Positions 4,029 to 28,425 of a stretch of 64,000 nucleotides of DNA are shown piece by piece; within the stretch, counting starts at the first letter, position 1; each line of letters starts with the position of its first letter. This DNA is from Amphiscolops sp. MND2022. Taxonomy: Eukaryota. The DNA lies in contig OZ076415.1 of the NCBI GenBank assembly GCA_964187785.1, forward strand, positions 46,500,001 through 46,564,000, written 5' to 3'. The translations under genes and the position numbers were made by a program. The notes below the pieces were generated by a model. That model saw only the letters and a program-made list of their open reading frames with translations, was not told the origin of the DNA and made no database searches.

Positions 4029-4254
4029 TAACTTGATTTAGTTTGTAAATTTTGGTAAAGTAGTTAGTTTTTAGTCAGATTTTTTTGTAGTTTTGTAAAT
4101 CAATGTTGGCAAATTAATTTTTGAATCAGGTTTTGTACTTAGTTAATGTATCCACTCAGTTCTTGTATTTAATTAGTTATGTATTTAGTCCGAAATTGCT
4201 CTTAAGGACGGAAGTCAATTTTTTCCATGAAACTCAATGAGAGATAAAAATTAG

Positions 4255-4403
4255 GCCAACTTGCGAAATGTTCGACAAGTTGCACTGGATTATTTTTTGT
4301 TATTATTATTAACTTTTTAATAATTCTGCAACTTGGTTAATAATTTTTCAGGAAAGATGCAACTTGTCTTGATTATTAGCAATTTTAATGCAACTTGGCC
4401 CTG

Positions 4404-4405
<2 letters not shown>
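4255..4405. repeat. Cluster of (G)CAACTTG/CAAGTTGC motifs abutting an (ATT)n tract
   Basis: gccaacttgc, acaagttgca, tgcaacttgg, atgcaacttgtc and atgcaacttggccctgatt occur within 150 bp; the last runs into the ATT tract at 4404. Confidence 0.7.

Positions 4406-4466
<61 letters not shown>

Positions 4467-4470
<4 letters not shown>

Positions 4471-7093: not shown

Positions 7094-7096
<3 letters not shown>
4467..7096. repeat. ~2.63 kb tandem unit, copy 1
   Basis: Starts ATATTTATACTACTCTCTATGGCA after (ATT)n 4404-4466 and ends ...TGCCATAGAAGAAATAATTG before (ATT)n. Contains three diverged ~170-200 bp subrepeats (~5745-6295) and minus-strand ORFs of 146 and 76 aa without recognisable domains. Confidence 0.95.
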
Positions 7097-7137
<41 letters not shown>

Positions 7138-7141
<4 letters not shown>

Positions 7142-9765
7142 TTATACTACTCTCTATGGCAAAAAATCGATAATTATACTACTCTCAATAGCACCACAAA
7201 TACTCTCTGTGGTTCCAGCGAATTTTCGATGAAGTCAAATACTGCAAAGAAGCAATAATTAATTACTACAAAAGCCCAAAAACGCTTTCACCAATAGCAA
7301 GAACAACTTTTCATATTTTTCTGTTCGAGTCATGACGTTTTAAAACGGTTTTCAGACGCCCAAACATTTTCGATGTACCTTTTGTGAACTATCAGACTCG
7401 CTATGTCTAGCAAGCGGAACTGTCGGACGCGAATTGTAAACAAAATGGGAACACAAAATCGAACTAAACTCTCATTGGCTAATCGATATATCGTTGAAAG
7501 CAACTTCTCTCAACACTATTCCGATCGTGTGGTGGCCGTACAAGCTTGATATGCATCTAAAAATATTATTAGACTCTCTAAGTAGAAAATTGAATTTAGG
7601 TTTATTATAAGACTTCCGTTGGGTAAATTGAAGTTACTATTGGAATTTTGTTGGCAAAGGTGATGAGTTTCCAACTACTCAAATCATCTTTTACTTTCAA
7701 ATTGATAGCTGAAACTTCAGCGATAGCTACAAATTATTATAGCCAAATATAATTCTGCCCAAATTATAACTAAACTGTTTCAAACTTCGTAACTGACAAA
7801 GCCAACAATAGCTTCAAAGAAATTGTTTATAAAAAGTTGAACTTCAATATTTTCAATTGAGCCAAAAATTGACATTTTATCTCTATTGTCTGCTTTTGTG
7901 AGTTCAAATTTCAATAACGCAATAATTCCCCAACCTGATTTTTTGAGTTTTCGAGAACGAGTATCGAGTTTTTTGATGAATTTCATTCTTTTTTGCGCAA
8001 AGTGACCAAACTTATCTTCTAGTTCATTTTGCGATTTCAGTCTCGTTTCGACGATATTGGGTAATTTCGTTGCATGGGGAGGTTGATACACGGTGTCTAA
8101 GTCAGTTGCCACAGCTCTAGAAGTTCGTTTTTGATTTAAGTCTATGTTTTCAGCTTTTTTCGTCTTTTTTTTTATTTCTATTGAAAATGTCTTGGTTCTC
8201 CTCAGAATTCTTTGACAACAAAACAATAGGCTGCAGATCTATTGAGGCGCTTCGAGATGAATGTTTGTTGTCTCAGATGCATATCTGACGCGTTTCTGCA
8301 AAAAAACACACTTTCCCGAGTTGACAAAAGTAATATAACGACGTTTTTTGTGAAATTTTGGACTATATAATTTCGGCATAAACACCAAACTGCTGATGTA
8401 TTCCAGCTAGTTCGAGCAAATAAAAGCGTCAATGATGTATATAATAAAACTCCCTAATTGAGGAATTTATCACAGCTTTCTAATCAGTAGTTTGCTTGCG
8501 ACAGTTTCGAGAAATCAACCGTCAAAGTATCTTCAGATTTGTAGCTAATGCCACTGTGTGTCTCATAAATATTGATCAGCACAAAAACCGAAAAACTGAT
8601 TTTTCCTAACAATTCGAGAAAATAAAAGCGCCAATGATGTAGTATAATGAAGCTCCTCAATTGGGAAATTTATCACAGCGTTCTATCAGTAGTTTGCTTG
8701 CGACAGTTTCTAGAAATCAACCGCAGCTACTGCCACAGTGTGTCTAATAAAAATTGATCAGCACAAAAACCGAAATGTGATTATTTTCCAACATTTCGAG
8801 AAAATAAAAGCCCCATTGATGTAGTATAATGAAGCTCCTGATTTGAGAAATTTATCACAGCGTTCGTTCAATAGTTTGTTTGCGACAGTTTATAGAAATC
8901 GGGGGTCAAAGTTTGCTCAGATTTGTTGCTTATGCCACTGGAAGTCTGATAAAAAATTGATCATAATAAAAGTCATAAAGTGACAATACTTCATTTTGAG
9001 CCAGTCGATCAGTCTGGTTTTTTGAACAGGGTCTCACTGAGTTGTGGGAAATCATTTTCAATGATTGTTTTTTAGGATTTGTTCCGGATTCTGAGAACAA
9101 AAACAATTTTTCCTTTTTAGGTCTTTCCTCACGATTTCGATATTAAGTTTTTGAGGTTGAATTTTATTCGTTTGCTTGCTTTGTGGAAATAATTGGTGGT
9201 ATCGAACGGAAAGTCATTCCAACGTTCAACTCAATGGGATAAAAGGTGTCATCTGAACCCTCTTCGTTAACGATTTTAGTCCCAGTTTTGTCATCAGCAC
9301 ACCAATCTAATCGCTTTTGCCATGGGAAGTCCTATTGAAATTGATGTTGGTGTTGTGAGTAATTATGGTCGAATCACTATTTTGATCAAATTTGTTTCAA
9401 AACGCTTGAAGAAGTTTAAATATACAACTGTTATGTGATCAGAACAATAAAAACAATTCTACAAAGTATTGAAATGACATCAGAACCCCATTGAACGAAT
9501 AATCCTGGCCTGAATACTTATGACGTCACATGCCATAGAGTGTATAATTACGTAATGGTTATTCCTTTGTTACGCTGATAGCAGCGAGCTGCGCATATGC
9601 ATGCACTCTTAATTTTGGTAGGTAGTTAAATTGGTAATACTGCCGCTATCGTGGAAAATTCCTATAAAAGCAAATGTCCAAAACCACCTATGGCCAAGGG
9701 TAAATCGGCTCGCGGACTCTCTATGGTTCCAAAATTCTCGGTCGTTAATGCCATAGAAGAAATAA

Positions 9766-9768
<3 letters not shown>
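7138..9768. repeat. ~2.63 kb tandem unit, copy 2
   Basis: Nearly identical to copy 1, with a few SNPs and a 1-bp homopolymer indel that changes the start of the ORF at 7780-8226. Bounded by (ATT)n at 7097-7137 and 9769-9800. Confidence 0.95.
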
Positions 9769-9800
<32 letters not shown>

Positions 9801-9804
<4 letters not shown>

Positions 9805-12427
9805 TTATACTACTCTCTATGGCAAAAAATCGATAATTATACTACTCTCAATAGCACCACAAATACTCTCTGTGGTTCCAGTGAACTTTCGATGAAGTCA
9901 AATACTGCAAAGAAGCAATAATTAATTACTACAAAAGCCCAAAAACGCTTTCACCAATAGCAAGAACAACTTTTCATATTTTTCCGTTCGAGTCATGACG
10001 TTTTAAAACGGTTTTCAGACGCCCAAACATTTTCGATGTACCTTTTGTGAACTATCAGACTCGCTATGTCTAGCAAGCGGAACTGTCGGACGCGAATTGT
10101 AAACAAAATGGGAACACAAAATCGAACTAAACTCTCATTGGCTAATCGATATATCGTTGAAAGCAACTTCTCTCAACACTATTCCGATCGTGTGGTGGCC
10201 GTACAAGCTTGATATGCATCTACAAATATTATTAGACTCTCAGTGTAGAAAATTGAATTTAGGTTTATTATAAGACTTCCGTTGGGTAAATTGAAGTTAC
10301 TATTGGAATTTTGTTGGCAAAGGTGATGAGTTTCCAACTACTCAAATCATCTTTTACTTTCAAATTGATAGCTGAAACTTCAGCGATAGCTACAAATTAT
10401 TATAGCCAAATATAATTCTGCCCAAATTATAACTAAACTGTTTCAAACTTCGTAACTGACAAAGCCAACAATAGCTTCAAAGAAATTGTTTATAAAAAGT
10501 TGAACTTCAATATTTTCAATTGAGCCAAAAATTGACATTTTATCTCTATTGTCTGCTTTTGTGAGTTCAAATTTCAATAACGCAATAATTCCCCAACCTG
10601 ATTTTTTGAGTTTTCCAGAACGAGTATCGAGTTTTTTGATGAATTTCATTCTTTTTTGCGCAAAGTGACCAAACTTATCTTCTAGTTCATTTTGCGATTT
10701 CAGTCTCGTTTCGACGATATTGGGTAATTTCGTTGCATGGGGAGGTTGATACACGGTGTCTAAGTCAGTTGCCACAGCTCTAGAAGTTCGTTTTTGATTT
10801 AAGTCTATGTTTTCAGCTTTTTTCGTCTTTTTTTTATTTCTATTGAAAATGTCTTGGTTCTCCTCAGAATTCTTTGACAACAAAACAATAGGCTGCAGAT
10901 CTATTGAGGCGCTTCGAGATGAATGTTTGTTGTCTCAGATGCATATCTGACGCGTTTCTGCAAAAAAACACACTTTCCCGAGTTGACAAAAGTAATATAA
11001 CGACGTTTTTTGTGAAATTTTGGACTATATAATTTCGGCATAAACACCAAACTGCTGATGTATTCCAGCTAGTTCGAGCAAATAAAAGCGTCAATGATGT
11101 ATATAATAAAACTCCCTAATTGAGGAATTTATCACAGCTTTCTAATCAGTAGTTTGCTTGCGACAGTTTCTAGAAATCAACCGTCAAAGTATCTTCAGAT
11201 TTGTAGCTAATGCCACTGTGTGTCTCATAAATATTGATCAGCACAAAAACCGAAAAACTGATTTTTCCTAACAATTCGAGAAAATAAAAGCGCCAATGAT
11301 GTAGTATAATGAAGCTCCTCAATTGGGAAATTTATCACAGCGTTCTATCAGTAGATTGCTTGCGACAGTTTCTAGAAATCAACCGCAGCTACTGCCACAG
11401 TGTGTCTAATAAAAATTGATCAGCACAAAAACCGAAATGTGATTATTTTCCAACATTTCGAGAAAATAAAAGCCCCATTGATGTAGTATAATGAAGCTCC
11501 TGATTTGAGAAATTTATCACAGCGTTCGTTCAATAGTTTGTTTGCGACAGTTTATAGAAATCGGGGGTCAAAGTTTGCTCAGATTTGTTGCTTATGCCAC
11601 TGGAAGTCTAATAAAAAATTGATCATAATAAAAGTCATAAAGTGACAATACTTCATTTTGAGCCAGTCGATCAGTCTGGTTTTTTGAACAGGGTCTCACT
11701 GAGTTGTGGGAAATCATTTTCAGTGATTGTTTTTTAGGATTTGTTCCGGATTCTGAGAACAAAAACAATTTTTCCTTTTTAGGTCTTTCCTCACGATTTC
11801 GATATTAAGTTTTTGAGGTTAAATTTTATTTGTTTGCTTGCTTTGTGGAAATAATTGGTGGTATCGAATGGAAAGTCATTTCAACGTTCAACTCAATGGG
11901 ATGAAAGGTGTCATCTGAACCCTCTTCGTTAACGATTTTAGTCCCAGTTTTGTCATCAGCACACCAATCTAAGCGCTTTTGCCATGGGAAGTCCTATTGA
12001 AATTGATGTTGGTGTTGTGAGTAATTATGGTCGAATCACTATTTTGATCAAATTTGTTTCAAAACGCTTGAAGAAGTTTAAATATACAACTGTTATGTGA
12101 TCAGAACAATAAAAACAATTCTACAAAGTATTGAAATGACATCAGAACCCCATTGAACGAATAATCCTGGCCTGAATACTTATGACGTCACATGCCATAG
12201 AGTGTATAATTACGTAATGGTTATTCCTTTGTTACGCTGATAGCAGCGAGCTGCGCATATGCATGCACTCTTAATTTTGGTAGGTAGTTAAATTGGTAAT
12301 ACTGCCGCTATCGTGGAAAATTCCTATAAAAGCAAATGTCCAAAACCACCTATGGCCAAGGGTAAATCGGCTCGCGGACTCTCTATGGTTCCAAAATTCT
12401 CGGTCGTTAATGCCATAGAAGAAATAA

Positions 12428-12430
<3 letters not shown>
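9801..12430. repeat. ~2.63 kb tandem unit, copy 3
   Basis: Nearly identical to copies 1 and 2, with private SNPs (e.g. ttttccagaacg versus ttttcgagaacg). Followed by (ATT)n 12431-12460. Confidence 0.95.
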
Positions 12431-12459
<29 letters not shown>

Positions 12460-12462
<3 letters not shown>

Positions 12463-12550
12463 ATCCGGGACAACTTGCCAGGGTGATTTCAAAATTAATC
12501 AGGACAACTTGCAAAATAAAGAGTGCAAGTTGGCATGCAAGTTGCCAACC
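12460..12550. repeat. Cluster of AATC(A/C)GG(G)ACAACTTGC / GCAAGTTG motifs; candidate left end of the YR element
   Basis: taatccgggacaacttgcc, aatcaggacaacttgc, tgcaagttggc and tgcaagttgcc immediately follow the last ATT tract. Confidence 0.65.
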
Positions 12551-13661
12551 CATCATATTTCGTTTCCTAAGGCCATCTTACTCAAAAAAAATTAATCACG
12601 TGTTTGGGGCTATAAATGGAAAAGGATGGCAATATAAAATTTTCATTTTTTTCTATTGAAAAAATTTTTGGGATAAAATTTTTTTGCCAAGTTGCTCCAG
12701 AAAAAAAATCCATTTTGCATGAAAAGATGCAATTTGGTATGATTTTTGAAAAAAATTTTCGGTGTCAAAAATTCAATTAATCCGATAAAACTCTGCTTTA
12801 TATCATAGAGTGACCTGAAAAACTGTTGTCAACCAAAAGCATCTCATGGAAAATCAGTACTAATAGTTTGAAATTCTTTTGAAAGAAATCAGCTACTTCG
12901 GACTGATTTCGACACCTGTATCAGAATATCGCATAAAACTTTTGATCTTATTTTCACAAATCAATACAGTAACATGAAGTCAAATGGTAATGAAAAAAAA
13001 TGCCCCCTTTTTGTTTTCTTGGTAATTTCCAAAAACAAAAAGCATCATGGGATTAAAAAATTCGGAGAAATTTTCGTTTCTGATGTAATTTTAGTAAAAA
13101 ACTATAAAAGTTAGTTTTTAGTTTAGAAAAACGGTAAAAATTTTAAAAAATCAATTCAGCAATTGATGGAGACTCGTTTACCTATGGAATTTGAGCACAA
13201 GGTTTTGTGAACCAATAAGATTTGAGAATTCTTTGCACATTGAAGTTTTGAAGTCTAAGATGTCGTCGCAGATAATACATCAGGTTAATTTCGACAGAAA
13301 GTTTACCAAACATATTCGTACAGGATAAAATCAGTCTATGATTCATAAATAAAAGGCCACTTATTTTACTCCCCCAACACAATTCCAAGCTGGAAACTTG
13401 TCACACTGAATTTACCTCGATGCAGAAGTCACCCCTTTCACGCAAAACGTAATAGTTGCCTGAGTAACAATACACAACCGTTATGGATAATGAGAGCCTC
13501 ATCCTTCTATTAGTAAAAATATTTTGTAAAAAATAGAAATAGTAGATGTTGATAACTGACAAAATAGAGAGAGTTCGAATAAGTTCTGTATAAACGACAG
13601 GCATAATTAGTTATTGATTTCACAATTGAATGCTTCGCTTCTGATTGGCCAAGGTTAAACC

Positions 13662-14029
13662 AATCGCAAGTTTTTGTGAGATTCACACCTTCAATTTGTG
13701 ATTTTCTGAATGTTCTGAATTTCTTTTATTAAATTCTCCATGAACAGGAAATTTACAGATGAGAGAACGATGATATTGTAAATTGGGATCAACAAATAAC
13801 AAATTCAAAAGAAGTAATATTTCCGTGGATAACGTATATAACAAAAATCGCAAGTTTTTGTGAGATTCACACGTTCAATTTGCGATTTTCTGAATGTTTT
13901 GAATTGGTTTTGGTTCTCCATACACAGGAAATATACAGATGAGAGACTTGATATTTTAAATTGGGATCAACAAGTTACCAGTTCACAAGAAGTGACATCT
14001 CCGTGGATAACTGGTATATAACAAAAATC
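13662..14029. repeat. Diverged 184-bp tandem duplication
   Basis: AATCGCAAGTTTTTGTGAGATTCACAC... begins at 13662 and again at 13846; both copies end ...CCGTGGATAAC..TATATAACAAAAATC. Confidence 0.85.
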
Positions 14030-14967
14030 TAATCCAATGAGTATAATTCAAACAACAAAAACGTGTCACGTTTCTATTCTGAACTAGTAAAGTGGAACAG
14101 CTTCTTTCCCACAGAGACTGCTAAATGATAGCTTCGATATATGTATATCAGTATATTACCCTCATGACATTTTAGAATAAATTTGACGCCAAGAAGCCAC
14201 TGATGAACAATATATGAAACTCTGAAGGAAGCTGATTAAAAGTTTCAAAATCTTAAAATTTTCTAAATTAAAATCTTTAAAAAGTACATATTCTCAAAAC
14301 TTTGTCGAAGAACTCTCTCAGTAGTTTTACTTATATGATTCATAATTATTTGAGCTAGCCACTAAAGCAGAACTAACTGAGCTAGCCACTAAAGTAATTG
14401 AGCAAAATTGCATAACAAGTAATACATGTACCTGTTTTACAAATATGAGTTTCTGATTGGCTGCAGCCTGCGTGCAGAGCGTGATTGAATGAACAATGTA
14501 CACGTACATATTGTGCTAGCAGCATTAGGTGTCAATCACATTACACGCACATGATTCATAACAACACTCAGTAAATTCATTCATACTACTGTAAATTGGA
14601 AACAGCTAACAAATTATTTTCCATTAAAGTTCACCCAAAAGTTATCGGCATGGCTAGCAAACCCCCCTATCAAGATGCCAGACCACAGTGCAACGGTGAG
14701 TAGAGTACTTAACTAACTAACTACTAACGTCACTAACTAGGGAAATTTATAAAATTATTTAAAACATTCTGAAGTATTCTGAAGTTAAGTATTCTGAAGA
14801 AATTATGAAGTGATTTTCAAAAGATAGTTTTCAGAGTATTGTTCAAAATAAATCAAATTGAAAAGATATTCTTCATGCTACTAATCTATAGAAAATATGG
14901 AGCAAATTCTATAAAAGGGGAATCAATAAGATAATCTGCATACTACGTAGTATTGAGAGACAACAAA

Positions 14968-17048
14968 ATGCCCACTCTGCATAAGCTTCCAGCTCAACGC
15001 CTTCCTCAAACCTCATCCACAAATTCACAACAACAAGCCGCGTCATCCAATTTACAACTCCAAGAAGAAGGCGACACTCGAGACGTCTCGCAACAACAGG
15101 GTGATGACACCGATTCAGAGATTCCTCAAGCTCTGATGGATATTATGAGGAACACTGAAGAAGTGAATCGGTTCTTCGACAACGTTGTCACAGACACAGA
15201 GAATACTGCGTTTGTCATGGTCATATCTGCTGACGATGTTGAGAGGGACTTATCTGGAATGAGGGAGAATTTGAAAGTGTATCACATCAAAGATGCTTTC
15301 AAATTCAAAGGATTGACCTCTACCATTCCGAAAAGGACTCTGAGCCTCAACTTCAAGGATTGTGTTCGGCAGATGGCCACCGAAAACTGCATGTCTCAAC
15401 AAGATGTCTTGGCCCGGCATTACAACGAGTCCGGTGAGGAAGAAATGAACAAGATGACTCTGGATCAGTTCATCAAAGGCATTGGGGAATCCAAATTCCC
15501 GATGAACGTCATCGATTTTTTTCCACCGGGTTGGTTGAAACCATTTTTTGTAGAAGTAGATACATAGAATATATTGAATTTATATACATACATATTTATA
15601 CATATATATAAATAATTTGTATAAATATATATGTATATATAAATATATATTTCTCGCGCTTTGAGTACCTTGTAGCCGTGTTTTTCAGATAACGCACAAC
15701 TTTGCCACTTCCAGCCGCCTGATGTAGTGAAAAAAGTTTCACTAGGACACCGCTATGAAAAAGTTTTGCCACCAGTGTTGAAGAGCTCGGACGTCAGCAA
15801 GTACATGCTGATGACAGAGGGAGGAGCCATAACACCTTGGCATGTCGACTTCTCGGGGACCAGTGTCTTCTACATTTTGTTGAAGGGCGAGAAGGAATTC
15901 TTGGTAGTCGAGCCAACTCTATTTAACAAGGAGCTTTTCGAGGACTACCTCGCGGGAAATCAGTAAGAGACTAAAATTTCTATCGAGAGTTCTCCGACAT
16001 AATATAGTTGTCATAATTTCTATAAGATGTTCTCAGCAGTCTAAGCACTCATACATATATACTTCTCTTATAGACTTATTCAATTACTTTGAATAATTAA
16101 TATAACTTCACGTTCTATTTTTACAGGACTGAGATATTTGGGACAGACCCAAGGTTGGCCGTGAGGAAAATAGTGCTAAAGGAGGACGAGGGTATGATCA
16201 TCCCCGGAGGAGTGCCTCATATGGTTCGGACTACGAAGGGTTCAATCGCGCGTGGTTCAAACTTCCTTTGGGATGTTCAAATGCGTAAGTCATCTAATGT
16301 TACCACAACATATAGCTATAGGATTGTATCTTGAAATGAAGTAATTGTTCTTCCATGAAACCAACGTTGACAAAAGATGTGATTTCTGAAATGTTTAGCT
16401 CAAATTGTGGAAACATTCAACAAAGAGAAGCAACAGGGGTTGTCATTTAACTCCTACTATCCTTCTCTCCCGGCGATTCTCTTGTTGTGGCTAATTGATC
16501 AACTCGACTCAAACCCTTCGAACGAGATGCTTCGAGTAGCAGATGTCCTGCTGAACAAAGATGCTCAAGACGAAACTCAAATTTACCTGGTATACTCAGT
16601 TTTATTTCATATTAACATCACATTACTTTTCCAAAGTATCTCCCAAAGTACTATTCTATAGAAGTTCTAGGACGAATTCCATAGGATATTCCCAACAATA
16701 CTTTTCTATAGAAATTATATCTTGAATTCTATAAGATATTCTCCAAAGCACCTTTTGTTATAGAAATTATAGAGTTAATCCCATAGATTCTACAATGTAT
16801 TATTGTTTAAATGTTATGAAGTTATGTCTATTAAAAAGTTTCATATATCATACATTAATTTTCTTCTTTAAATATGTATTCTAAAAACTTATTATCCCCA
16901 TATATCAATACAGTATACTATAAAAACACACTAATAAGAGTTTTTTTGTGTTTAGCAACAAATGATGTCAAACAATGTGACTCTGCCCAGCTGGCAAACC
17001 CTCAATAGAAAAATATTGACTGCCAGAAGAAAGCTGTTGAAAAACTGA
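14968..17048 (+). CDS. JmjC-domain histone lysine demethylase, KDM2/KDM7(PHF8)-like, 5 exons, ~425 aa
   Basis: Inferred exons 14968-15529, 15689-15962, 16127-16284, 16399-16589 and 16956-17048; all introns GT-AG, phases compatible, total 1278 nt with no internal stop. Motifs TPWHVDFSGTSVFYILLKGEKEF (Fe ligands H 15841 and D 15847; 2-OG Lys 15892) and MIIPGGVPHMVRT...GSNF (third ligand H 16218). No PHD, CXXC or F-box domain seen. Confidence 0.88.
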
Positions 17049-17491
17049 ATCATGCCCCATTCTGCATCAATGATCAAACTTCCTAAACTTTTCTTTTGCA
17101 AACATATATTTATCTTTTGTTCACTTTTCCTAGATTCAGTAAAACTTCCAACATTTTTATATTTATACCTTCGTCTTCAATATTAGTTTTAAGACCTCGT
17201 TTATCTAATCATAAAATACCATAGCGTACAACTCAGGTGTAAACATATTACTCATGTTAACAACCAGTTCAATATCAGAGGTGTAACTTTAACAACCATG
17301 TTGCATACCAGTTTGCGTTTAAAATGAGTCTAATAGAGCCTCATCGTTTGTGATTGAGTCCATCAGAGTGAGTTAACATTTGTTAGACTTCCAAGTTTTG
17401 AAAAATTTTTCATTAAACCCAGCTCCACTTTGGAAACAAGTTGAAACTTAACAGCGGTAAAAAAATCTACTGATAGCCAAATTGCTTAAAA

Positions 17492-20400
17492 ATGCCAAGC
17501 CTTCGATCACAAGCTCTTCTAACCCGCGCCACCCGGCAGCAAGTCAAGACTGCACCTGCAGCAAAACCGAAGGGATACGAGGGGAAACCAAAACCGAAAA
17601 CGAGAGGAAAGAAGACGAACTGTGACATTGAAAACGGAACAAGCATGGTTAATGCCCCTATACTTAACACCATAATCAATGGAACTGCAGTACCCACTGA
17701 AGAGCCACTTACAAAACCTGCGTCAGCTTCTCACGTTGAAATTTCTGAACCCACCCACGATGCTGAGACTTCGTCACCCACTGGCGGGTCACCCCTAGAA
17801 TCTGTGTCAGCTCCTGATACTAAAACTTTGGCACCTACTAACGATTCACCCCCAGAAGCCGTGTCAACTCCTGATGATGAAACTTCAGCGCTAACTAACG
17901 GTGCCTCCCCAGTAGCTATGTCAGCTCCTGATGGTGAAACTTCAGCACCCAGGTCCGTTTCACCTGATGCTGAAATTTTTGCCCTCACTGACGATTCACC
18001 CCCAGAATCGTGTGACGACCCAATTCCACAAACGGCGTCAGCACCTGATGCTGAAACGTCGGCACCTAGTAACGATTTACCATCAGAAGCTGTGTCAACT
18101 CTTGATGATCAAACTTCAGCGCTAAGTAACGGTTCCTCCCCAGTAGCTAGGTCAGCTCCTGATGGTGAAACTTCAGCACCCAGGGCCGTTTCACCTGATG
18201 CTGAAATTCTTGCCCTCACTGACGATTCACCCCCAGAATCGTCTGACGACCCAATTCCACAAACTGCGTCAGCACCTGATGTTGGAACTTAGGCCATCAC
18301 TGACGATTCACCCCCAGCACAAACTGACTATTCACCGCAAAAAGCTGAGTCAACTTCTGACAGAAAAACTGCAACATCCACTGACGAGGCTCTCCCAGAA
18401 ACTGTATCGCCGCAACTATTGAGACTGCCTGAAACGGAAGACGAGATGCGTCCAGACTTGGTACTTGGTGCTATTGACGCATACTGCACAAAAAGCTTCA
18501 TCGATACCGACGTACGTACTTCCCACAAGTACGTTGAGCCACCAACAAATATTTTTGCGATCATCAGCAACAATCCCCAGCACCAGAAGCTTTTCAGTCA
18601 GATGATGGAATCCTATTCTTCATCATTCGAAAGTGTCAAGTATGTCGACATTCCCGGATACCAAGGCGGGATCGAGTTTTCTGTCAGAGCTCGGAAGGCG
18701 CTCCCGAAAGGACTGAAAATTCGTGGTGTCGACGGCTACTTCGCAGATGCAGTACAAAACGCTCCTTCGTTCTCTGTCTTCGGGGCGACAGACAACAACT
18801 CAAAGGAGAGGATAATACTAGGACCAGCAAGCTTCATTAACCACAGCTGTGAACCCAATGCAGTGTTTGTCTGTGGAGGGCCAACAAAAAATCAAACTGT
18901 GTTGAGAGTGGAAACAACTCGGGGGATTGCTGAGAATGAGGAAATTTTCGTCAGTTATGGGGGAAATTATTTTGGCCAGAATAACGTTCAATGTTTGTGC
19001 CAAGTTTGCAAGGGTAATAATTCCGATGATTCCAATAGCACTGAACAGCGCAAAGCTAAATCGTACTCCAAGAAGACCAAATACGACGACGTGACCCAAT
19101 GCCCTATCTGCGAGAAGACTTCGAAGCGGATCGACAAGCACCTCTCTCAACAACATCCAGAGCTGACGAGATCTGACATCGTGATGCTGAAAGACTTCTT
19201 CAGGACTCAGCATCTTCATGCGAACACCAAAGTGTTCTTCTGTTCTGAGCATAACAGAAGATTCATAGACAGGGCCAGTCACAAAAGGAGCATGAAGTGC
19301 AATGACTCCAACATATCTGTTGTTGCTAATCATCAGAGTAGAACGTAAGTTACTACTTTAAGCAAAGTAATAGTACTAGAACTAAAACATTTGTAGTACT
19401 TGTTATAGTAAAAATCACCTCTCAAAGAATAAAGTAGTGTTTCCTAAATTATGGTATTGAAAAATGGAAGCAAAATCTACAATTTGTTTTTTTTCTGTTT
19501 AGATCATTGCCAGTAGAACTGAGATGTAAACTAAGGAATGGATGTATTCCCCGTGAGGAGCACTTGGACATTGTCACCAGCTTTGTCAACATGGAATTCC
19601 GCAAAAGAGGCAAAAATACAGATGAAAATGAGGAAGTGAAGGGGAAAGATGGCTTGAAGAACGTTCTTGCGTTGTTGTATGGACAAACAATGGGTCTAAC
19701 GCAGCCCAAAGCGCTGGCTCCAGCAATTGAAAACTTAGAACGGCGGAAGGGATGGCTTCCAACAACAACTGACATTTACCTCACTCACTTCAAGAACTTC
19801 TGTGAGTATTGCAACTGCTACGAAAGACCGAATGTGAGGAAAGATTTCAAAATCGAAGTTATGAAGAAGGCCTGCAGGGATGTGAAACGAAAAATCAGCG
19901 TGGATGTGTCAAAGTCAAAACGCGAGGGAGCTAAAGAAAGGTTCGCGCAAGTGCCTACAAAACAACAGGTGACCAAACGACAACGGCAGGTGATAGAAGC
20001 TCTGACGAACGACCTCGACGACAAAAAGTTGAGCCTAAACTTCTTGAAGGCCCTCAACTTTTTCCTGCTCCAAGTTCGACTCAATGTGAGGCCTGGGCCA
20101 CTGTTGAACATAAAATGGGATCAATTTGATTCTCATTTGAGGCATGGATTCTCAATTGAAACCAACGAGCACAAAACAGGTAACTTTTTATAGAATTTAA
20201 AGAGTGAATACTATAAAAAACGCTACATTGTATTATTCTATAGAAATTATGAAGGTTTTTCTATAAAAAAGTGTTCAACAAAAGTTTTTATTCTAACTTA
20301 ATACAATATATTGTTTGCAGGAAAATACTACACAGTGGCCGTGAAAATGGATGGGGACCAAGTCAAATTCGTGCAAGAGATGCGGGAACGGATGCTTGAT

Positions 20401-21462
20401 GAGTATGGCACCGTTCCGGACTACGTCTTCTCCAATAGTCAAAATGGGCAGGAAACGAAGATCGCCTGGTACATTAACCAGTGCTTCACAGAGTTGTTTG
20501 GGGACGATCCCACAGTGACAAGGTACAATGCCACGTCAATTCGAAAGTTCTGGGATGAGCATATTGACAAGATGAACATGCAGGACAACGATGAAGAAGC
20601 TCATTTCTCCCAGACAGGTCACTCGAGATCAACGGCGAAAAAACACTACATAAGTAAGCAAACTTTGCAAATAATTTTATACCAAACTACCAATACATTT
20701 GAAATCTTTTATGCAAATTTTTCCATTGATGTTTATATCAGCTTGTAATTTTGTTACAATCACTTATTTATTCACAATGTGGTTTCAGGAGTTACAGAGG
20801 CTGACAGAAATAAAGTGCTTGATGTGTACCGCAAAGAACTTAACACAATTCCTGAAGATGATGATGGCAATGAATCAGGAATTGAACCATTGCCTGCCGA
20901 CCATTGCCCTGATTCTGACTCTGATACAGTATCAGAAGAGGAGGAGCCTCAACCGCGAGCACCATACAGAGCGTCGCTGAATTCGACGATGGATCTGCAC
21001 TCTGGTCGAAAGCGAAGAAGAAGAGAGTCGACCTCCGATGACGATGATAATGACGAAGCCAACAACCTGCCTTCGCCAGAACACTCCGTTCGAAAGCGTA
21101 CGAGAAGAGAGCCAGCCTGTGGTGACGACGCTGATGACGAAGACAACCATCAGCCACCCTACACGCCTGGGCCAAGTTCACGTGGAACCACGAGGAACAA
21201 ACCAACGCCCAAACCCAGACAACGAAGTCCAACCCGAATGCGCTTCATCAAAAGCATGTCTGTTTTCAGAAAAACGAGAACTGGGTGGACAGAGGAGGAG
21301 AAACGAGCATGCAGCCTACTCGCTGAGACTGTCACATCATCAGTACAAATGACGGAAGTGCGGGAAATGTTGATTCAGATGGAGTTCAACTTCAATCGAG
21401 AGGCTGTCAAGAAAATCTACCAAAAGATTAAGACTGCATGGTCTCTTCTGAGAAACTGCTGA
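17492..21462 (+). CDS. SET (Suv4-20-like)-C2H2-tyrosine recombinase-Myb/SANT fusion protein, 4 exons, ~1178 codons, one in-frame TAG at 18290-18292
   Basis: Inferred exons 17492-19344, 19503-20179, 20321-20653 and 20789-21462 (GT-AG, phases 2/1/1 join in frame, 3537 nt). SET ~18665-19009 (SFSVF, LGPASFINHSCEPNAVFV, EEIFVSYGGNYFG, CLCQVC). C2H2 CPICEKTSKRIDKHLSQQH ~19100-19156. YR motifs NVRPGPLLNIKW (R 20089), EHKTG (K 20173), ATSIRK (R 20542), TGHSRSTAKKHY (H 20620, Y 20647). C-terminal GWTEEEK Myb/SANT-like helix bundle. An alternative ATG at 18446 lies just after the stop. Confidence 0.85.
17755..18330 (+). repeat. Coding minisatellite in the N-terminus of the SET-YR gene (S[A/T]PDxETSA-type repeats; 231-bp higher-order duplication)
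   Basis: Repeated tcagctcctgatggtgaaacttcagc-type units; blocks starting at 17931 and 18162 are offset by exactly 231 bp (77 aa). Confidence 0.9.
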
Positions 21463-21676
21463 AATTAAATATTGTTCTTTATTTTTGTTTTAAATTCGAA
21501 AGAATTAAAATTTTCAATTGAATGTTTCATTAACAAAATTTTACCTTTTTTCTAGTACCAGGTGAGTTACCATTCAGTTGAAATCGACATTTGCCTAACT
21601 TGTAGATAACGTTCGCTCAAAGTAACAATCTTGGAACAGTTGTTGGTAGAAAAAGTAAAAGTGTAAAAAGTGTGAA

Positions 21677-21860
21677 AAATCAGGGACATGTTGCAAAAAT
21701 GAGGACAAGTTGCATTTCTGTTAATAATGTAACAGTTGTTAGTAAAAGTGTAAAAAGTGTGAAAAAATCAGGGACATGTTGCAAATATGAGGACAAGTTG
21801 CATTTTTGTTAATAATGTCATTATTATTATTAAGTCTAATAATAATGGTGCAACATGGCA
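21677..21860. repeat. Duplicated AATCAGGGACATGTTGC...GAGGACAAGTTGC block plus short (ATT)n; candidate right end of the YR element
   Basis: Two ~85-bp copies (from ~21660 and ~21745) containing aatcagggacatgttgc and atgaggacaagttgcattt, then cattattattatt and aataataatggtgcaacatggc. Confidence 0.65.
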
Positions 21861-22702
21861 TTTTGGATAATAACAAAATCGAGGAAGTTGGTATGATTTT
21901 TGGATAAAATCACTATAAAATGCGTGTCATGCTAATATCGGTTTACATCCGATGTTTCTGTAATAGCCAGTTTGTTAGTTGTTTCTAGCACTTTCTTCCT
22001 ATTTACGCGTGACTAACGTCAACAACCTGGACAATGCAATTCGCCAACGCGAGCAATTCGCCATTACAAATCATTTGTTTGCCTGAGCTCCCAAATACAG
22101 CAGTTGGTTTCTCTATTGCATTTCTATTTTTGATTGAATGACTTCATTCATTCATTTCTATTTTTGATGTTGTTTTTAAATCTAAACTCATTTGAAATTT
22201 CTAAAACTTGAAATCCTTGATTTTTGAAACAACAATACTCAAATTGGGTCTTGCCTGTTAATTCCCCCCGGAAAAATTAATCGAATGAATTGCTTTTCTC
22301 TCTGGCTTATCTAATTTTGAAAGTTTTTAAAGCTAATTTCATTTGAAATTCCTAAAAGTTTAAATCTCTGAATTTCGAAACACAAATTTGAAATTGAGTA
22401 TTTTGTTATTTTTATACCACACCCACCCCCCCCCCCCAAAAAAAAAAACTTATTTGCAATTAATTTATATTTTAATTGCCCGCAACCAATTAAAACAATA
22501 ATAAATTAATTGCATATAAGTTTTAGTCAAATTTTTGTACTTCCCAGGGGGGGGGGTGTTAAGAAATTCAGTTGAACATTCAAAAGTAGGAAAACGCTTT
22601 TCAAATTAGTTTATAAATTTAGGGAAAATATCAATCAACTTAATGTGCAAGTTGGCAAAAATTCACTTCAAATTCTAAATAGAGAAATCAACTTTGTTAG
22701 AA

Positions 22703-23128
22703 ATGACAACAAACGTTCCTAATTACATCACCTTCCAAGGAAAGCGCAAGGAGAGCCTCTACTACCATGGTGGAGACTACTTATACCTGAAGTCAATGGA
22801 GAGAGGGGAGACTACATATCTAAAGTGCCAGGTCAAGACTTGCCAAGCGACAGCCGTGGTGCGGGACCGAATCCTAATTCAACGAAGGGCCCACAACCAT
22901 ACTCAACCATCGATGCAAGAAATCGAAGACATCAAACGGCTGGCAAGAGTCAAGGACGAAGCCGAGAGGACGTTCGACGGCCCTGGCTGCAGCCAGATCT
23001 ATGACGAGGCAGTCACGTGGTCGGAGACGTCCTCCACAGGCAGGGCCGAAGCTCGGAAGAGGCGGCAGCAGACGTTGGCGTCTATGCGTCAGCGTCGAAG
23101 CCGCCTACGAAGAGCGGAAGCCCAGTGA
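22703..23128 (+). CDS. FLYWCH-type zinc finger protein (Mutator/Phantom-associated domain), 141 aa
   Basis: LYYHGGDYLYLKSMERGETTYLKCQVKTCQATAVVRDRILIQRRAHNH fits the F/L-Y-W/L-C-x4-C-x-HxH pattern, followed by a basic helical tail; ATG at 22703. No DDE domain adjacent. Confidence 0.7.
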   Translation: MTTNVPNYITFQGKRKESLYYHGGDYLYLKSMERGETTYLKCQVKTCQATAVVRDRILIQRRAHNHTQPSMQEIEDIKRLARVKDEAERTFDGPGCSQIYDEAVTWSETSSTGRAEARKRRQQTLASMRQRRSRLRRAEAQ

Positions 23129-23733
23129 AGCCTTGACCTTGCCAAGCGACCTATATAACTATATTCTCTATACAACATTTTCATCCGAATAAGAGTCAAA
23201 TTTTCAAAAATTGATCGAGTAACTTTCTCATTCAACACTTCAATTCTCAATCGTTATCAATTGTTCATTTCTTCATGTCTTCATTCATTTTTTGAACATT
23301 TTCGGCCCATTTCATTCCCCACCTAAGCTGTCGCTTCGCAAGTCTTGGTCCTGGCAAACTTTGTTGTTTTCCCATCTCTCCATTGGTGCTTAGATTTAGT
23401 ATTTAGATTGTAGTCTCCACCATGGTATTGTTCCCCTTACGCTTTCCTTGGAAATTCACTTCTCTAGTGTTAGTTTTCGTATCCGTATGTTTGAGCGAGG
23501 TTGAGAAATAAGTTGGAAGAAGTTACAAAAAATGAGTAGATAGTGCATACTAGATAGTACATGGAAAAACAAATGAAATTAATAGTTGCTACCATTAATT
23601 AATAGTTGCTACCACAAGGATAATTTTTCATGACCTAGCTGGGAAAATAAAGACTTGGGGGTTGGCTTGGTATGAGAGAATATGCTGATGAAATACTTTC
23701 CTCCAAGGGTAACCGGGGGGGGAGTTTTAAAAT

Positions 23734-24240
23734 TTGATGGTTAAACTGCGATCGCCGAAGCTGGCTGGACGATTACGCGAATTTACAAAACTAAAACCGG
23801 TTGTCCGAAACAAGACGCGTTGGCTAAGTACAATGACAATGGTCCAGAGATACATAAAACTGAAACCAAGTTTGGAATTTCTTAGCAGTGATAGAAAGCT
23901 TGTTGATCTCCTTCCTTCTCCAGTGCAAAACTCTGACATAGACGAGTTAAGCGAGAAACTTGTGAAATTGAAGTCTGTCACAGTTGCACTTCAAGGCGAA
24001 GACATTGACCTATGTGATGCAAGAGCACTTTTTGACAAAATCCTCGAAGAATATAAGGAACCAGATTTCAAGAAGTATTTGGACAAGGAGGCACATATCG
24101 TGCACTGCAAGGTCTTTGACAATGCTGTAGTCAAATGCCTCTCTGGAAACTTGGAAACATTGTCAGCAGAAGAACTCGTTGCACTTGTTCCGCTACATAT
24201 ACAAGCGAAGCAAATTGTTGATCCTCCAATTAATTTTTGA
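23734..24240 (+). pseudogene. hAT-superfamily transposase internal fragment
   Basis: KPVVRNKTRWLSTMTMVQRYIKL matches the hAT 'TRWxS' signature, followed by LLPS...SVTVALQ...ARALFD...YL...IVH..VFDNAVVK. N- and C-terminal parts are missing. Confidence 0.7.
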
Positions 24241-24545
24241 AAAGCCCTGAATGGGTGTTAGCGTGAGAAACAGGAGTGTTTTTCGTTTTTTTCCTCAAGT
24301 CTAAAGCTTTTTAGACTTTTCAATTCAAAAGTGTTTTCTTTTAATAAATTACTGCAGGAGGGGGTACTAAATCGAAATTAACTGAAAAGATCGAGGCACG
24401 GTTGAATGAAAACTCAATTAATTACGTTGTATCATAAAACAGTTCTTCTTCTTGAATTTCACTTCTCCGGAACTGCAGTATTTATCCAAAACCAAGTAAA
24501 AAACGTAACTTCGGTAAACTTGAAGAAAACTGAACAATTTTTATT

Positions 24546-24868
24546 CATAATTGGAAATGTGCTAAAACTGAAAACGTAGTGCAGGTACCTATCCAACATT
24601 GGTTACGTGGTAATGAACTGGAGTTGTAATGCATCATAACAATATCATTAGCACTGTTGAAACTAGTTTCCCACTGCAGGGGTTTAAATGGCCCGCGGAA
24701 ATCTGTTTTACGGGTTATTCTTAAGGACAAATAGCCCCTTTGGAAGCAATCTACGTGTTCCAAATAACCCCCTTAATATCTTAATACTAACTTGGCATTG
24801 CTATTTACACAGCGGAGTTACTTGTCCTGCGCAGTTTAATATTGAGTGTAGTTTGGCATTGCGATTAC

Positions 24869-24903
<35 letters not shown>

Positions 24904-27560: not shown

Positions 27561-27772
27561 ACCAGGGCACAAATTAGCCCTATGTTGATGTCAGAGGACA
27601 AATAACACCCTACACGAAATACCAGAGGACACATAACTCCTATGTTTAATATCAGGGGACAAATAACCCCATACTTTAAATACCAGAGGACAAATAACTC
27701 CTATGGTTAATATCAGAGGACAAATAACTCCATACGTTAAATACCAGCGGACAAATAACTCCTATGTTTAAG
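27561..27772. repeat. ~30-bp minisatellite, about 7 copies, alternating dimer structure
   Basis: Consensus approximately AATA(C/T)CAGAGGACAAATAAC(T/C)CC(T)AT; units alternate ...ccata..ttaaatacc and ...cctatg.ttaatatc. Confidence 0.9.
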
Positions 27773-27959
27773 ATAAAAGATCTTTTCTAAATTGAGGTGT
27801 AAAATTGTACTCGCATCTAATTGGCTCAACATAAGCCAATTAATTGAACGCATTGTGGTGACACAAGAATCAAGAATCAAAATTAAAAGAACACAAAAAT
27901 CGATCATGACTAAAGATGTTTTCAAAATCAAAATCAAAATGAAGTGATCATCTATGTTG

Positions 27960-28259: not shown

Positions 28260-28425
28260 TTTGGGGTGTTTGTGTTTGTGGGGTGGGGGGGGGGGGGGGG
28301 GTGGATTGAACACATGGTCCACAATTGTGGACCATGTGTTCAATCCCCTCCCCCCAAATACCTTGTCGCGAATTTACCACCCCCCCCCCCCCACAAACAC
28401 AAACACAAACACAAACACAAACAAA
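28260..28425. repeat. Perfect 44-bp palindrome nested in G-run/C-run and (GTGTTT)/(AAACAC) inverted arms
   Basis: GGATTGAACACATGGTCCACAA|TTGTGGACCATGTGTTCAATCC at 28303-28346; GTGTTTGTGTTTGTG and poly-G on the left, poly-C and (CACAAA)n on the right. Confidence 0.9.

Follow-up and report, generated by a model that had tools for sequence, protein, structure and literature searches.

The locus studied here raises the question of why a gene resembling a histone methylation writer fused to a tyrosine recombinase (YR) and a gene resembling a histone methylation eraser lie side by side. The window, by which we mean the whole stretch of 64,000 nt that was analyzed (Amphiscolops sp. MND2022, assembly GCA_964187785.1, contig OZ076415.1, positions 46,500,001 to 46,564,000, forward strand), had been described preliminarily as carrying two spliced, co-oriented genes at 14968 to 21462, separated by 444 bp, amid transposon debris and as parts of a tyrosine-recombinase mobile element. 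These points hold: with GT/AG sites and the absence of internal stops as constraints, exactly one model remains for the JmjC gene (five exons) and one for the SET-YR gene (four exons), the gap from the JmjC stop at 17048 to the ATG at 17492 is 443 bp, and the surroundings consist of repeats and transposon remnants. The two genes are parts of one mobile element, which exceeds the interval originally flagged and spans about 12460 to 21910. To the reading as a whole, namely that this interval is a recent, lightly damaged copy of a two-gene YR transposon that would integrate at ATT repeats as proposed below and be served by its own chromatin enzymes, we assign a probability of about 0.7. The features of the locus, all on the + strand, are as follows.

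4254 to 12426, +: left neighbors, a motif cluster resembling the right end (4254 to 4400) and then three head-to-tail 2.63-kb units
12427 to 12461, +: left-junction (ATT)n tract (TRF); the sequence shared by the window, L003, and L004 begins immediately downstream
12462 to 12520, +: left terminus, ATAATCC, then GGGACAACTTGCC (motif at 12468 to 12478) and a second motif, GGACAACTTGC (12502 to 12512), both from the motif scan; terminus also present in L003 to L007
12462 to 14952, +: left noncoding arm, no open reading frame (ORF) of at least 70 aa, 99.3% identical to L003/L004
14968 to 17048, +: JmjC gene, open in the window copy, 425 aa; exons 14968 to 15529, 15689 to 15962, 16127 to 16284, 16399 to 16589, and 16956 to 17048
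17492 to 19344, +: SET-YR exon 1, low-complexity repetitive N terminus, predicted Suv4-20-like SET domain (from about 18446), and C2H2-type finger
18290 to 18292, +: in-frame TAG interrupting SET-YR exon 1 in the window copy only, a sense codon in L003/L004
19503 to 20179, +: SET-YR exon 2, predicted YR core-binding domain followed by the initial half of the catalytic domain, with Arg I and the Lys of HKTG
20321 to 20653, +: SET-YR exon 3, remaining half of the predicted YR catalytic domain, with Arg II (SIRKFW) and the His and nucleophilic Tyr of GHSRSTAKKHY
20789 to 21462, +: SET-YR exon 4, with an acidic/basic linker and, at the C terminus, a conserved helical domain (WTEEEK...IYxKIK)
21463 to 21910, +: right subterminal region, with an 88-bp tandem repeat (21654 to 21818) carrying four GGACA(A/T)GTTGC motifs
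21910 to 24900, +: right neighbor, the 3' part of another family; it has a FLYWCH-finger ORF, terminates in (ATT)n (24871 to 24900), and is 98.9% identical to L002, positions 9154 to 6154

Extent, copies, and damage of the element

The full form of the element is about 10.3 kb long and carries two genes. Two loci of the public assembly, L003 and L004, match the window from 12424 to 21910 with 96.4 to 99.8% identity depending on the region, and three older copies (L005, L006, and L007; 84 to 94% identity) retain the gene order and have suffered an LTR-element insertion, an internal deletion, and truncation. A sharp left end is common to the window and L003 to L007, that is, to at least six copies, and lies behind unrelated left flanks, three different ones in the window, L003, and L004 alone. 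The right flanks of L003, L004, and L006 are not independent, since all three adjoin the same neighbor (element B). Together with two further subfamilies (L008 and L009), these copies bear out the expectation that the JmjC and SET-YR genes recur together in multiple copies with variable flanks, and the fixed left end supports the assignment to a mobile element.

Every copy examined carries lesions. In the window copy these are the in-frame TAG at 18290, a deletion of 889 bp upstream of the JmjC gene, and truncation on the right. In all four sequencing runs, the contigs have another letter at position 18291, and the codon is a sense one there. The left arm, which holds a 184-bp tandem duplication (13662 to 14029), stops at the breakpoint at 14953, where the 889 bp of L003/L004 are missing. 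Likewise, the last right-hand motif and the (ATT)n tract of L003/L004 are missing in the window copy because it is truncated at 21910. The complete layout reads flank-(ATT)n-ATAATCC-GGGACAACTTGCC ... GCAACTTGTCCC-TGATTTTT-(ATT)n-flank. All ORFs of at least 70 aa on the element are accounted for by the two genes, none of the genes called within the L003/L004 copies has a recorded reverse transcriptase (RT) family, and the element's ends lack LTRs, carrying just 12-bp motifs and the 88-bp subterminal tandem repeat. Rfam gave zero RNA families in the window. A giant element or virus was considered for the window copy and rejected, since its two defined ends lie about 10 kb from each other.

Could these be two host genes, domesticated from a recombinase or simply ordinary genes for chromatin proteins, spread by segmental duplication rather than by transposition? 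The introns and ordinary GT-AG structure of both genes would fit such an origin, as would the right-hand neighbor common to L003, L004, and L006, but the at least six copies share one sharp left end behind unrelated left flanks, and copies have acquired stops, frameshifts, deletions, and a retroelement insertion independently of one another. Moreover, the catalytic residues of the YR are kept, unlike in domesticated DUF3504 genes (PMC3212892), relatives occur in a marine and another metagenome, and the locus lies among repeats and transposon remnants. We reject the host-gene origin on the structure of the copies and regard it as very improbable.

The SET-YR protein

The predicted SET-YR product consists of a low-complexity N terminus, a Suv4-20-type SET domain, a C2H2-type finger, a two-domain YR, and a C-terminal helical domain. 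The N-terminal part of exon 1 is built of 57/231-bp repeats (17789 to 18317); the exon 1 stretch forms one open ORF of 618 aa in L003/L004, and its start, MP(S/R)xRSQ, is common to the relatives P0106 and P0070. In the window copy, the stop-free model begins at ATG 18446 and has exons to 19344 and then at 19503 to 20179, 20321 to 20653, and 20789 to 21462. We infer splicing from intron-less relatives, which align straight over the predicted junctions: exon 3 runs on from exon 2 in P0004, P0005, and L008, P0005 has the YR and the C-terminal domain in one ORF, and the distant relative P0048 encodes SET, finger, and YR in one uninterrupted ORF, where a single tblastn segment spans all three predicted junctions. 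Contigs of the four runs keep all three introns and show no joints, so that these runs behave as DNA.

The SET domain was recognized by Pfam (E 8e-10), its ten best PDB sequence matches are all KMT5B/C (E 1e-11 to 2e-10), and its 15 best Foldseek matches are all SUV4-20H1/H2 over about 230 aligned columns. TM scores by target were 0.49 to 0.64 (0.61 to 0.64 for full-length matches), for a structure model with a mean pLDDT of just 64 and a core of 80 to 95. The predicted fold includes the Suv4-20-specific N-terminal helical domain, placing the domain within KMT5/Suv4-20, and with KMT5B/KMT5C (SUV4-20H1/H2) it has in common NH(S/D)C, the catalytic Tyr, and the C-x-C-x2-C zinc cluster. By sequence and modeled fold, then, the domain is KMT5B/C-like, as had been suggested, and P0048 agrees with the further claim that it shares its reading frame and protein with the recombinase. 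It differs from these enzymes in sitting in a recombinase protein and in its sequence, with only 17 to 28% identity to solved SUV4-20 structures in the fold alignments. Over 12 relatives with 25 to 88% identity, NHSC, Tyr, and C-x-C-x2-C are invariant or nearly so (N132, H133, C135, and Y171 invariant; C183, C185, and C188 at least 90%), and this family-wide conservation of catalytic, cofactor, and zinc-binding motifs argues for retained catalysis.

The recombinase was missed by Pfam on single exons, and a family profile found no recombinase among PDB sequences. Its identification thus rests on motifs, on a Phage_integrase Pfam match in one relative (4.3e-5; 32 family members searched), and on the predicted fold, which matches Xer, Cre, and integrases over both domains with Z scores of 10 to 12.7. 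Arg I is present in 29 of 29 family sequences, the Lys in 24 of 26, Arg II in 22 of 24, the second His in 24 of 24, and the Tyr in 18 of 23; at the position of the first His in the classical R-H-R-Y tetrad, the family has N or T. The dN/dS between L004 and L007 is 0.31 for the YR and 0.38 for SET plus finger. The preliminary description of a four-exon SET-C2H2-YR-Myb gene stands for SET and YR, with the TAG in exon 1 noted above. For the finger we find a C-x2-C-x12-H-x4-H pattern and weak ROS/MucR-type matches in relatives. The Myb label has to be dropped, and no other family replaces it, since the C-terminal domain matched zero Pfam families even at E 5.

With a predicted YR, no RT, and no LTRs, the element is classed with YR (Crypton-type) transposons, so that the earlier name Crypton applies in a structural sense only. 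DUF3504, the Pfam family derived from Crypton YRs, is matched at E 0.01 or better by none of the 32 members of the family searched, and by this measure the YR does not group with CryptonF/S/A/I recombinases or with the Crypton-derived domain.

The JmjC gene and possible roles of the chromatin enzymes

In L003/L004 an ORF continues upstream of the JmjC ATG, and the possibility that this part is also coding is countered by the MPTL start of the protein, which is conserved in L008 and L009, so that 14968 is taken as the true start. Exon 2 matches PHF8 (1e-10), PHF2 (4e-10), KDM2A (7e-10), and KDM7 (1e-8) in the PDB with HVD, T, and K aligned, and exon 3 matches Caenorhabditis elegans KDM7 (ceKDM7) with the second His aligned. 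The H-x-D...H triad and the 2-oxoglutarate (2-OG) Lys had been reported as intact; these alignments agree, and the whole Fe(II)/2-OG site (H-x-D, second His, Thr, and Lys) is present. The product is, as predicted from sequence, a KDM7/PHF8/KDM2-like dioxygenase with an intact active site, sharing also the NFL motif of PHF8/KDM7A/KDM2A. On single exons, Pfam gave weak JmjC matches and no domain in the first exon (186 aa) or elsewhere outside the JmjC core, and the PDB matches are confined to the catalytic core. The known enzymes carry targeting modules, PHD in KDM7/PHF8 and CXXC, F-box, and LRR in KDM2; here, in contrast, the PHD, CXXC, and F-box parts are missing from the protein by Pfam.

In at least five copies the JmjC gene falls within the boundaries common to them, and its assignment as the element's own gene is supported. 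Possibly, the SET domain, tethered to the recombinase, docks the latter on nucleosomes via the H4 tail and/or methylates H4K20 at donor or target sites, and the JmjC enzyme might strip repressive marks of the H3K9me2, H3K27me2, or H4K20me1 type and thereby keep the element expressible. These roles are the weakest step of our explanation, and the substrates are guesses from homology alone. Conceivably, the enzymes do not serve the chromatin of the element at all: the SET domain could be a non-catalytic nucleosome-docking module or a methylator of non-histone substrates, and the JmjC gene a captured host gene drifting to loss. Such a reading would fit the JmjC dN/dS, which is mildly below 1 (0.58 to 0.82 for L004 versus L005, L006, and L007), the loss of the Asp of H-x-D from one JmjC copy in L009, the stops in the L008 copy, the absence of a JmjC gene within reach of the most distant SET-YR loci (L001 and L002, with L010 too short to be counted on this point), and the lack of PHF8/KDM7 reader domains. 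It accords poorly with the pairing of JmjC and SET-YR over subfamilies that are 45 to 60% alike, with conserved intron positions, start, and active-site motifs, and with the near-invariance of the SET motifs and zinc cluster, and we consider it rather doubtful that neither enzyme acts on the element's chromatin.

To our knowledge, transposons with chromatin enzymes of their own are rare. Among cut-and-paste transposons, SET domains are encoded by HarbingerS and MuDR families of Phytophthora (Repbase Reports 2014, as cited in PMC12730594); TET/JBP-encoding fungal transposons are another type with an enzyme for epigenetic marks, and the VANC proteins of plant VANDAL elements provide a further example. 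The first two resemble the present element in carrying such an enzyme, presumably to counter or steer silencing, but are DDE transposons of oomycetes and fungi in which, in the account cited there, SET is described as an incorporated gene. In contrast to HarbingerS and MuDR, SET is here fused to a YR, in an animal host, is of the H4K20 (KMT5) type by homology, and is accompanied by a demethylase-like gene. None of the examples found pairs a writer with an eraser. A search of published papers turned up no YR element described with SET or JmjC, and the 2011 Crypton survey (PMC3212892) lists neither, in line with the earlier remark that a described Crypton family with both cargoes is not known. 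With a methyltransferase-like domain in the recombinase, a co-inherited demethylase-like gene, and young copies that are 99% alike, the family offers a natural experiment on how mobile elements may manipulate histone methylation. Given a compact element with defined parts, the steps of motif binding, circle formation, H4K20 methylation, and demethylation are directly testable.

ATT tracts and proposed integration

Wherever a boundary of a young copy could be resolved, it consists of an (ATT)n tract beside inverted GGGACAA(C/G)TTGC motifs. The motif scan yielded 11 occurrences versus 1.67 expected, clustered at the element ends, and 0 of 100 shuffles reached 11; those of the left terminus are candidate recombinase-binding sites. 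All six (ATT)6+ tracts in the window have one orientation and lie at repeat-unit boundaries. Together, this suggests YR-mediated integration into ATT microsatellites and the growth of co-oriented element chains. We propose that the recombinase would excise the element as a circle, in which two inverted motif sites flank a single ATT-repeat crossover region, and that the circle would integrate by strand exchange inside a genomic (ATT)n microsatellite, leaving an ATT tract on each side. Each integration would recreate targets, and different elements would thus line up in co-oriented chains with nothing but (ATT)n between them, here and at related loci.

The tracts between two motifs measure 27 to 150 bp, and classical YR sites have far shorter spacers of 6 to 8 bp. 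In older copies (L006 and L007) the tract is degenerate or absent, and L008 has no (ATT)5+ tract. L008 and L009 are related to the window copy with 45 to 60% aa identity in SET-YR and 28 to 54% in JmjC, which is on the opposite strand there. The L009 element sits exactly between two 2.39-kb units that are 99.1% identical, with (ATT)n at each boundary and a matching motif layout; blastn gave no similarity of the 2.63-kb unit of the window to this flanking unit.

Among the copies examined, we encountered no instance of an empty site, an excised circle, or a polymorphic insertion, so that (ATT)n could be part of the element rather than its target. The termini might seed the microsatellite or carry it along, or the element might spread when microsatellites undergo homologous recombination or unequal crossing-over, and integration specificity would then lie elsewhere or be absent. 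The variable tract length, the degeneration in older copies, and the several unrelated repeat units in the window and at related loci that likewise end in (ATT)n would all be compatible with this. Integration into (ATT)n, in contrast, would account for tracts on both sides of full copies, for their uniform orientation, for the precise position of the L009 element between near-identical units of a kind that elsewhere abut via a single (ATT)n, and for a similar microsatellite association in a relative of about 30% identity (27 to 32%), a YR-only element whose contigs begin at a (TAA)n tract. We therefore think an element-borne origin of the tracts unlikely.

Crypton DNA transposons (Goodwin 2003) are the closest comparison. 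They comprise CryptonA/I of animals and CryptonF/S (Kojima and Jurka 2011, PMC3212892), and share with our element the lack of RT and LTRs, intron-bearing genes in some cases, and a proposed circular intermediate. In described Cryptons, short identical end sequences (4 to 6 bp) are taken as crossover substrate (PMC3212892). The (ATT)n tracts at both ends of full copies are analogous to these and much longer, their use in crossover being putative. Animal Cryptons are described without an extra C-terminal domain and without terminal repeats, and other groups carry GCR1_C or C48 peptidase domains (PMC3212892), whereas here the YR shares its protein with a Suv4-20-type SET, a zinc finger, and a C-terminal domain and is accompanied by a JmjC gene, the ends bear inverted 12-bp motifs, the shared end sequence is a microsatellite, DUF3504 is unmatched, and the first His of R-H-R-Y is replaced. 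Insertion into a simple repeat is also reminiscent of endogenous nimaviruses, whose telomere-repeat/rDNA-specific tyrosine recombinases insert into (TAACC)n as a "sequence niche" (PMC10871703), a likeness that is putative for the (ATT)n element. These are giant viral genomes rather than a 10-kb two-gene transposon, use another target repeat, and have no SET or JmjC reported there.

More broadly, the element might represent an undescribed superfamily of animal YR transposons, with relatives in marine metagenomes and (as unaligned Atlas leads) in chordates and molluscs, in which an integrase tethered to an H4K20 methyltransferase, together with a KDM7-type demethylase, would write and erase marks at donor and target sites and integrate in an oriented manner into (ATT)n to form chains; we put this forward tentatively, as a real possibility that we do not favor. 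As a site-specific integrase competent in chromatin, its recombinase might also attract interest. If true, a eukaryotic YR with a simple, abundant, and oriented (ATT)n target would explain the build-up of chains of unrelated repeats at microsatellites. The 2.63-kb, 3-kb, and 4.6-kb units neighboring the element in the window contain no second SET-YR or recombinase remnants, and the three 2.63-kb units are each bounded by co-oriented (ATT)n tracts, at 4404, 7099, 9771, and 12433.

Gene structure and domains of the SET-recombinase protein

Two split genes lie in the same orientation on the + strand at 14968-21462 of the window. With exon boundaries set by a GT/AG search that required the absence of internal stops, the models recover both genes of the preliminary description, a five-exon JmjC gene and a four-exon gene for a SET-finger-tyrosine recombinase protein (SET-YR).

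Predicted genes of the window copy (one single predicted model each)
JmjC gene, + strand: exons 14968-15529, 15689-15962, 16127-16284, 16399-16589 and 16956-17048; 425 aa
SET-YR gene, + strand: exon 1 ending at 19344, then exons 19503-20179, 20321-20653 and 20789-21462

An ORF at 17492-18292 is in frame with the SET exon, from which it is separated solely by a TAG at 18290-18292. The same 1857 bases form one open 618-aa ORF in L003 and L004, the youngest related copies, and the N-terminus MP(S/R)xRSQ is found again in the distant relatives P0106 and P0070. The SET-YR gene therefore starts at 17492, as first proposed, 443 bp downstream of the JmjC stop, and is interrupted prematurely by the TAG in the window copy.

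In the contigs of four sequencing runs, the introns were retained and no joints were present. The proposed fusion of SET and recombinase in one protein is nevertheless supported by comparison with relatives. P0048, encoded on a JGI metagenome contig (L001), contains SET, finger, and YR in a single uninterrupted 895-aa ORF, and one tblastn segment between this locus and residues 218-665 of the spliced window protein crosses all three predicted junctions. Likewise, P0004 joins exons 2-3 and P0005 exons 2-4 in one ORF, and the SET-finger-YR order is repeated in four further related loci (L002, L008, L009, and L010).

The SET domain (Pfam SET, E 8e-10) resembles Suv4-20 enzymes, as had been suggested: the best ten PDB sequence matches are all KMT5B/KMT5C (E about 1e-11), and the best 15 Foldseek matches of its AlphaFold model (mean pLDDT 64, core 80-95) are SUV4-20H1/H2, over about 230 aligned columns that include the N-terminal helical domain. 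N132, H133, C135, and Y171 do not vary among 12 relatives at 25-88% identity, and the C-x-C-x2-C cluster hardly does. Exon 2 of the JmjC gene matches PHF8, PHF2, KDM2A, and KDM7 (E 1e-10 to 1e-8) with the T, H-x-D, and K aligned, and for exon 3 the match is C. elegans KDM7, where the second His aligns, consistent with the intact catalytic triad and 2-OG Lys originally described.

Exon 2 of the SET-YR gene, searched against 1.84 billion representative proteins, returned only 71 relatives. Their alignment shows conservation of Arg I, the HKTG Lys, Arg II, the second His, and the Tyr, with N or T at the first His position of R-H-R-Y. The model of the intron-less P0005 (pLDDT 79) matches tyrosine recombinases and type IB topoisomerases only, with Z of 10-12.7 across both domains, in agreement with the initial recombinase call. 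A C-x2-C-x12-H-x4-H pattern forms a putative zinc finger, for which relatives give weak ROS/MucR-type matches. The C-terminal domain, previously labeled Myb, is conserved among relatives but matches no Pfam family, and that label is therefore unsupported.

Copies, lesions, and selection

The view of this locus as a mobile element is supported by the related copies, and the element extends beyond the 14968-21462 first noted. L003 and L004, on two contigs of one public assembly, are 96.4-99.8% identical by region to window 12424-21910; the three copies share a common left end, and their left flanks are mutually unrelated. Three older copies (L005-L007; 84-94%) retain the order left arm, JmjC, SET-YR and carry independent damage in the form of an LTR-retroelement insertion, an internal deletion, and a truncation. 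The JmjC gene is paired with SET-YR throughout L003-L009, so that both the multicopy nature with variable left flanks and the co-occurrence of the two genes expected from the initial reading are found. In L008 and L009, two divergent subfamilies with SET-YR at 45-60% protein identity, the JmjC gene (28-54% identity) is found on the opposite strand some 5 kb upstream and has the MPTL start, intron positions, and active-site motifs of the window gene. JmjC has thus long belonged to the element and is no accidental neighbor.

Lesions of the window copy and the youngest relatives
Window copy: in-frame TAG at 18290-18292; loss of 889 bp up to a point 15 bp before the JmjC ATG; right end truncated at 21910
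L003: JmjC frameshift; one SET-YR stop; 54-base in-frame deletion
L004: 54-base in-frame deletion as sole lesion; both ORFs open; every GT-AG site kept

The 54-base deletion takes out 18 residues of a helix conserved among relatives. The 889 bases absent from the window (L003 4543-5432; L004 4475-5412) open with a 123-bp palindrome, an inverted duplication of window 14817-14939, which may have triggered the deletion; in L003 and L004 the roughly 100 codons that precede the JmjC ATG are free of stops. The window copy abuts part of another element family at 21910. Between the window and L003/L004, the JmjC region (14968-17048) is 96.4% identical, compared with 99.3-99.8% for the remainder of the element, and its codon differences comprise 28 non-synonymous and 5-6 synonymous changes. 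This suggests either that the window copy is a mosaic between subfamilies or that constraint on its JmjC gene has been relaxed. The dN/dS values of L004 against the decayed L007 (0.38 for SET plus finger, 0.31 for YR) and those of JmjC against L005, L006, and L007 (0.58-0.82) point to purifying selection in the active lineage that is clearly weaker on JmjC.

Element ends and neighboring units

This analysis adds the (ATT)n structure of the ends. Full copies read flank-(ATT)n-ATAATCC-GGGACAACTTGCC ... AAAATGCAACTTGTCCC-TGATTTTT-(ATT)n-flank, and the 12-mers at the two termini form an inverted repeat with 11 of 12 positions identical; additional motif copies are located subterminally. The window holds 11 motif matches (1.67 expected), 10 of which cluster at element ends. 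L009 has the same layout with its own variant, GGCCAAGTTGC, and sits exactly between two 2.39-kb units (99.1% identical), where each boundary carries (ATT)n. The six (ATT)6+ tracts of the window all share one orientation, and each marks the boundary of a repeat unit, the units being three of 2.63 kb, the element, a 3-kb part of a different family, and one of 4.6 kb. The right neighbor across the ATT tract in L003, L004, and L006, whose right flanks are not independent, is another element ("element B"), and contigs of a YR-only relative from several metagenomes (27-32% identity) begin at a (TAA)n tract. In older copies the tracts are degenerate. Neither an empty insertion site nor a circular form was seen here.

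In the favored reading, the element would move as a circle carrying a single ATT tract between inverted candidate binding sites, in the order GCAACTTGTCCC-TGATTTTT-(ATT)n-ATAATCC-GGGACAACTTGCC, this tract being much longer than the classical YR spacer. Strand exchange inside a genomic ATT microsatellite would then leave an ATT tract on each side, and the targets recreated in this way would give rise to co-oriented chains of elements.

Other features of the window
2879-3400: 173-aa ORF, superfamily-3 helicase domain (RNA_helicase 2.2e-15, Parvo_NS1 1e-4)
4254-4400: four CAA(C/G)TTGC-type motifs (two +, two -) directly before the (ATT)n at 4404; 78% similar to the L003/L004 right end
4404-12460: three head-to-tail 2.63-kb units, 96-100% alike, variable (ATT)n between them; inverted CTCTATGGC / GCCATAGAG motifs near both ends; each with a 146-148-aa ORF, minus strand, without Pfam family
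21910-24900: 3-kb segment holding two ORFs, one with a FLYWCH finger (22694-23128) and one of 168 aa (23734-24240); 98.9% identical to L002 6154-9154
24900-29532: 4.6-kb unit with 61-bp tandem repeats (27584-27774), a G-run/C-run inverted repeat (28266-28412), and an (ATT)n terminus; last ~190 bases 88-91% similar to the end of the 3-kb segment
47080-47685 and 56360-56875: transposon remnants, a DUF4796_C ORF and a Tc1/mariner-type HTH ORF

The latter remnants fit the transposon debris originally reported around the genes. The 2.63-kb unit is possibly a non-autonomous partner that has multiplied at the same microsatellite, and 4254-4400 resembles a right end belonging to another related element. 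In L002, the counterpart of the 3-kb segment adjoins a divergent SET-YR gene (about 37% aa identity, opposite strand), the whole being bracketed by (AAT)n; this is a second family of SET-YR elements, whose cargo differs and includes no JmjC.

Element B (L003 12383-15842, L004 12311-15791, L006 14290-17677) lies directly right of the SET-YR element across (ATT)n, ends in ...GGGCCTCCCGTT(A/G)TC-(ATT)n, and encodes a 639-aa YR-like protein without SET, 22-24% identical to the recombinase part. P0074, a 747-aa YR-only relative, is identical on 15 ENA metagenome contigs from several samples (L011-L015); three contigs start at a (TAA)n tract located 1.86 kb before the gene, and at their ends the contigs carry tandem repeats of roughly 55-110 bp.

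Possible roles of the chromatin enzymes and relation to known elements

KMT5-type enzymes methylate H4K20, and KDM7/PHF8-type enzymes remove H3K9me1/2, H3K27me2, and H4K20me1. From homology, the most economical reading would be that SET, being tethered to the recombinase, guides it to nucleosomes and/or methylates H4K20 where the element leaves or inserts, and that JmjC counters repressive methylation of the element. Because the catalytic motifs are retained across the family, we favor a real enzyme activity of SET; the case for JmjC appears weaker.

Having a YR and neither a reverse transcriptase nor long terminal repeats, the element is structurally of the Crypton type, although no family member matches DUF3504. 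Animal Cryptons have been described without extra domains or terminal repeats, the extra domains of other Crypton groups being GCR1_C and C48 peptidase (PMC3212892). Endogenous nimaviruses have microsatellite-specific YRs with a C2H2 domain that target (TAACC)n (PMC10871703), and Phytophthora Harbinger and MuDR elements carry SET genes, according to work cited in PMC12730594. No description of a YR element with SET or JmjC was found in the literature searched.

Every sequence relative looked up derives from an assembly without annotation (ENA, Logan, or JGI; a TARA Oceans scaffold is among them), and none bears a name other than "hypothetical protein." Atlas feature searches gave, as leads only, chordate and mollusc clusters of SET proteins 969-1342 aa long. 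For P0116, a 530-aa recombinase relative, 71 nearly identical member sequences are spread over many large ENA contigs; at least one genome appears to contain a highly amplified set of this recombinase superfamily.
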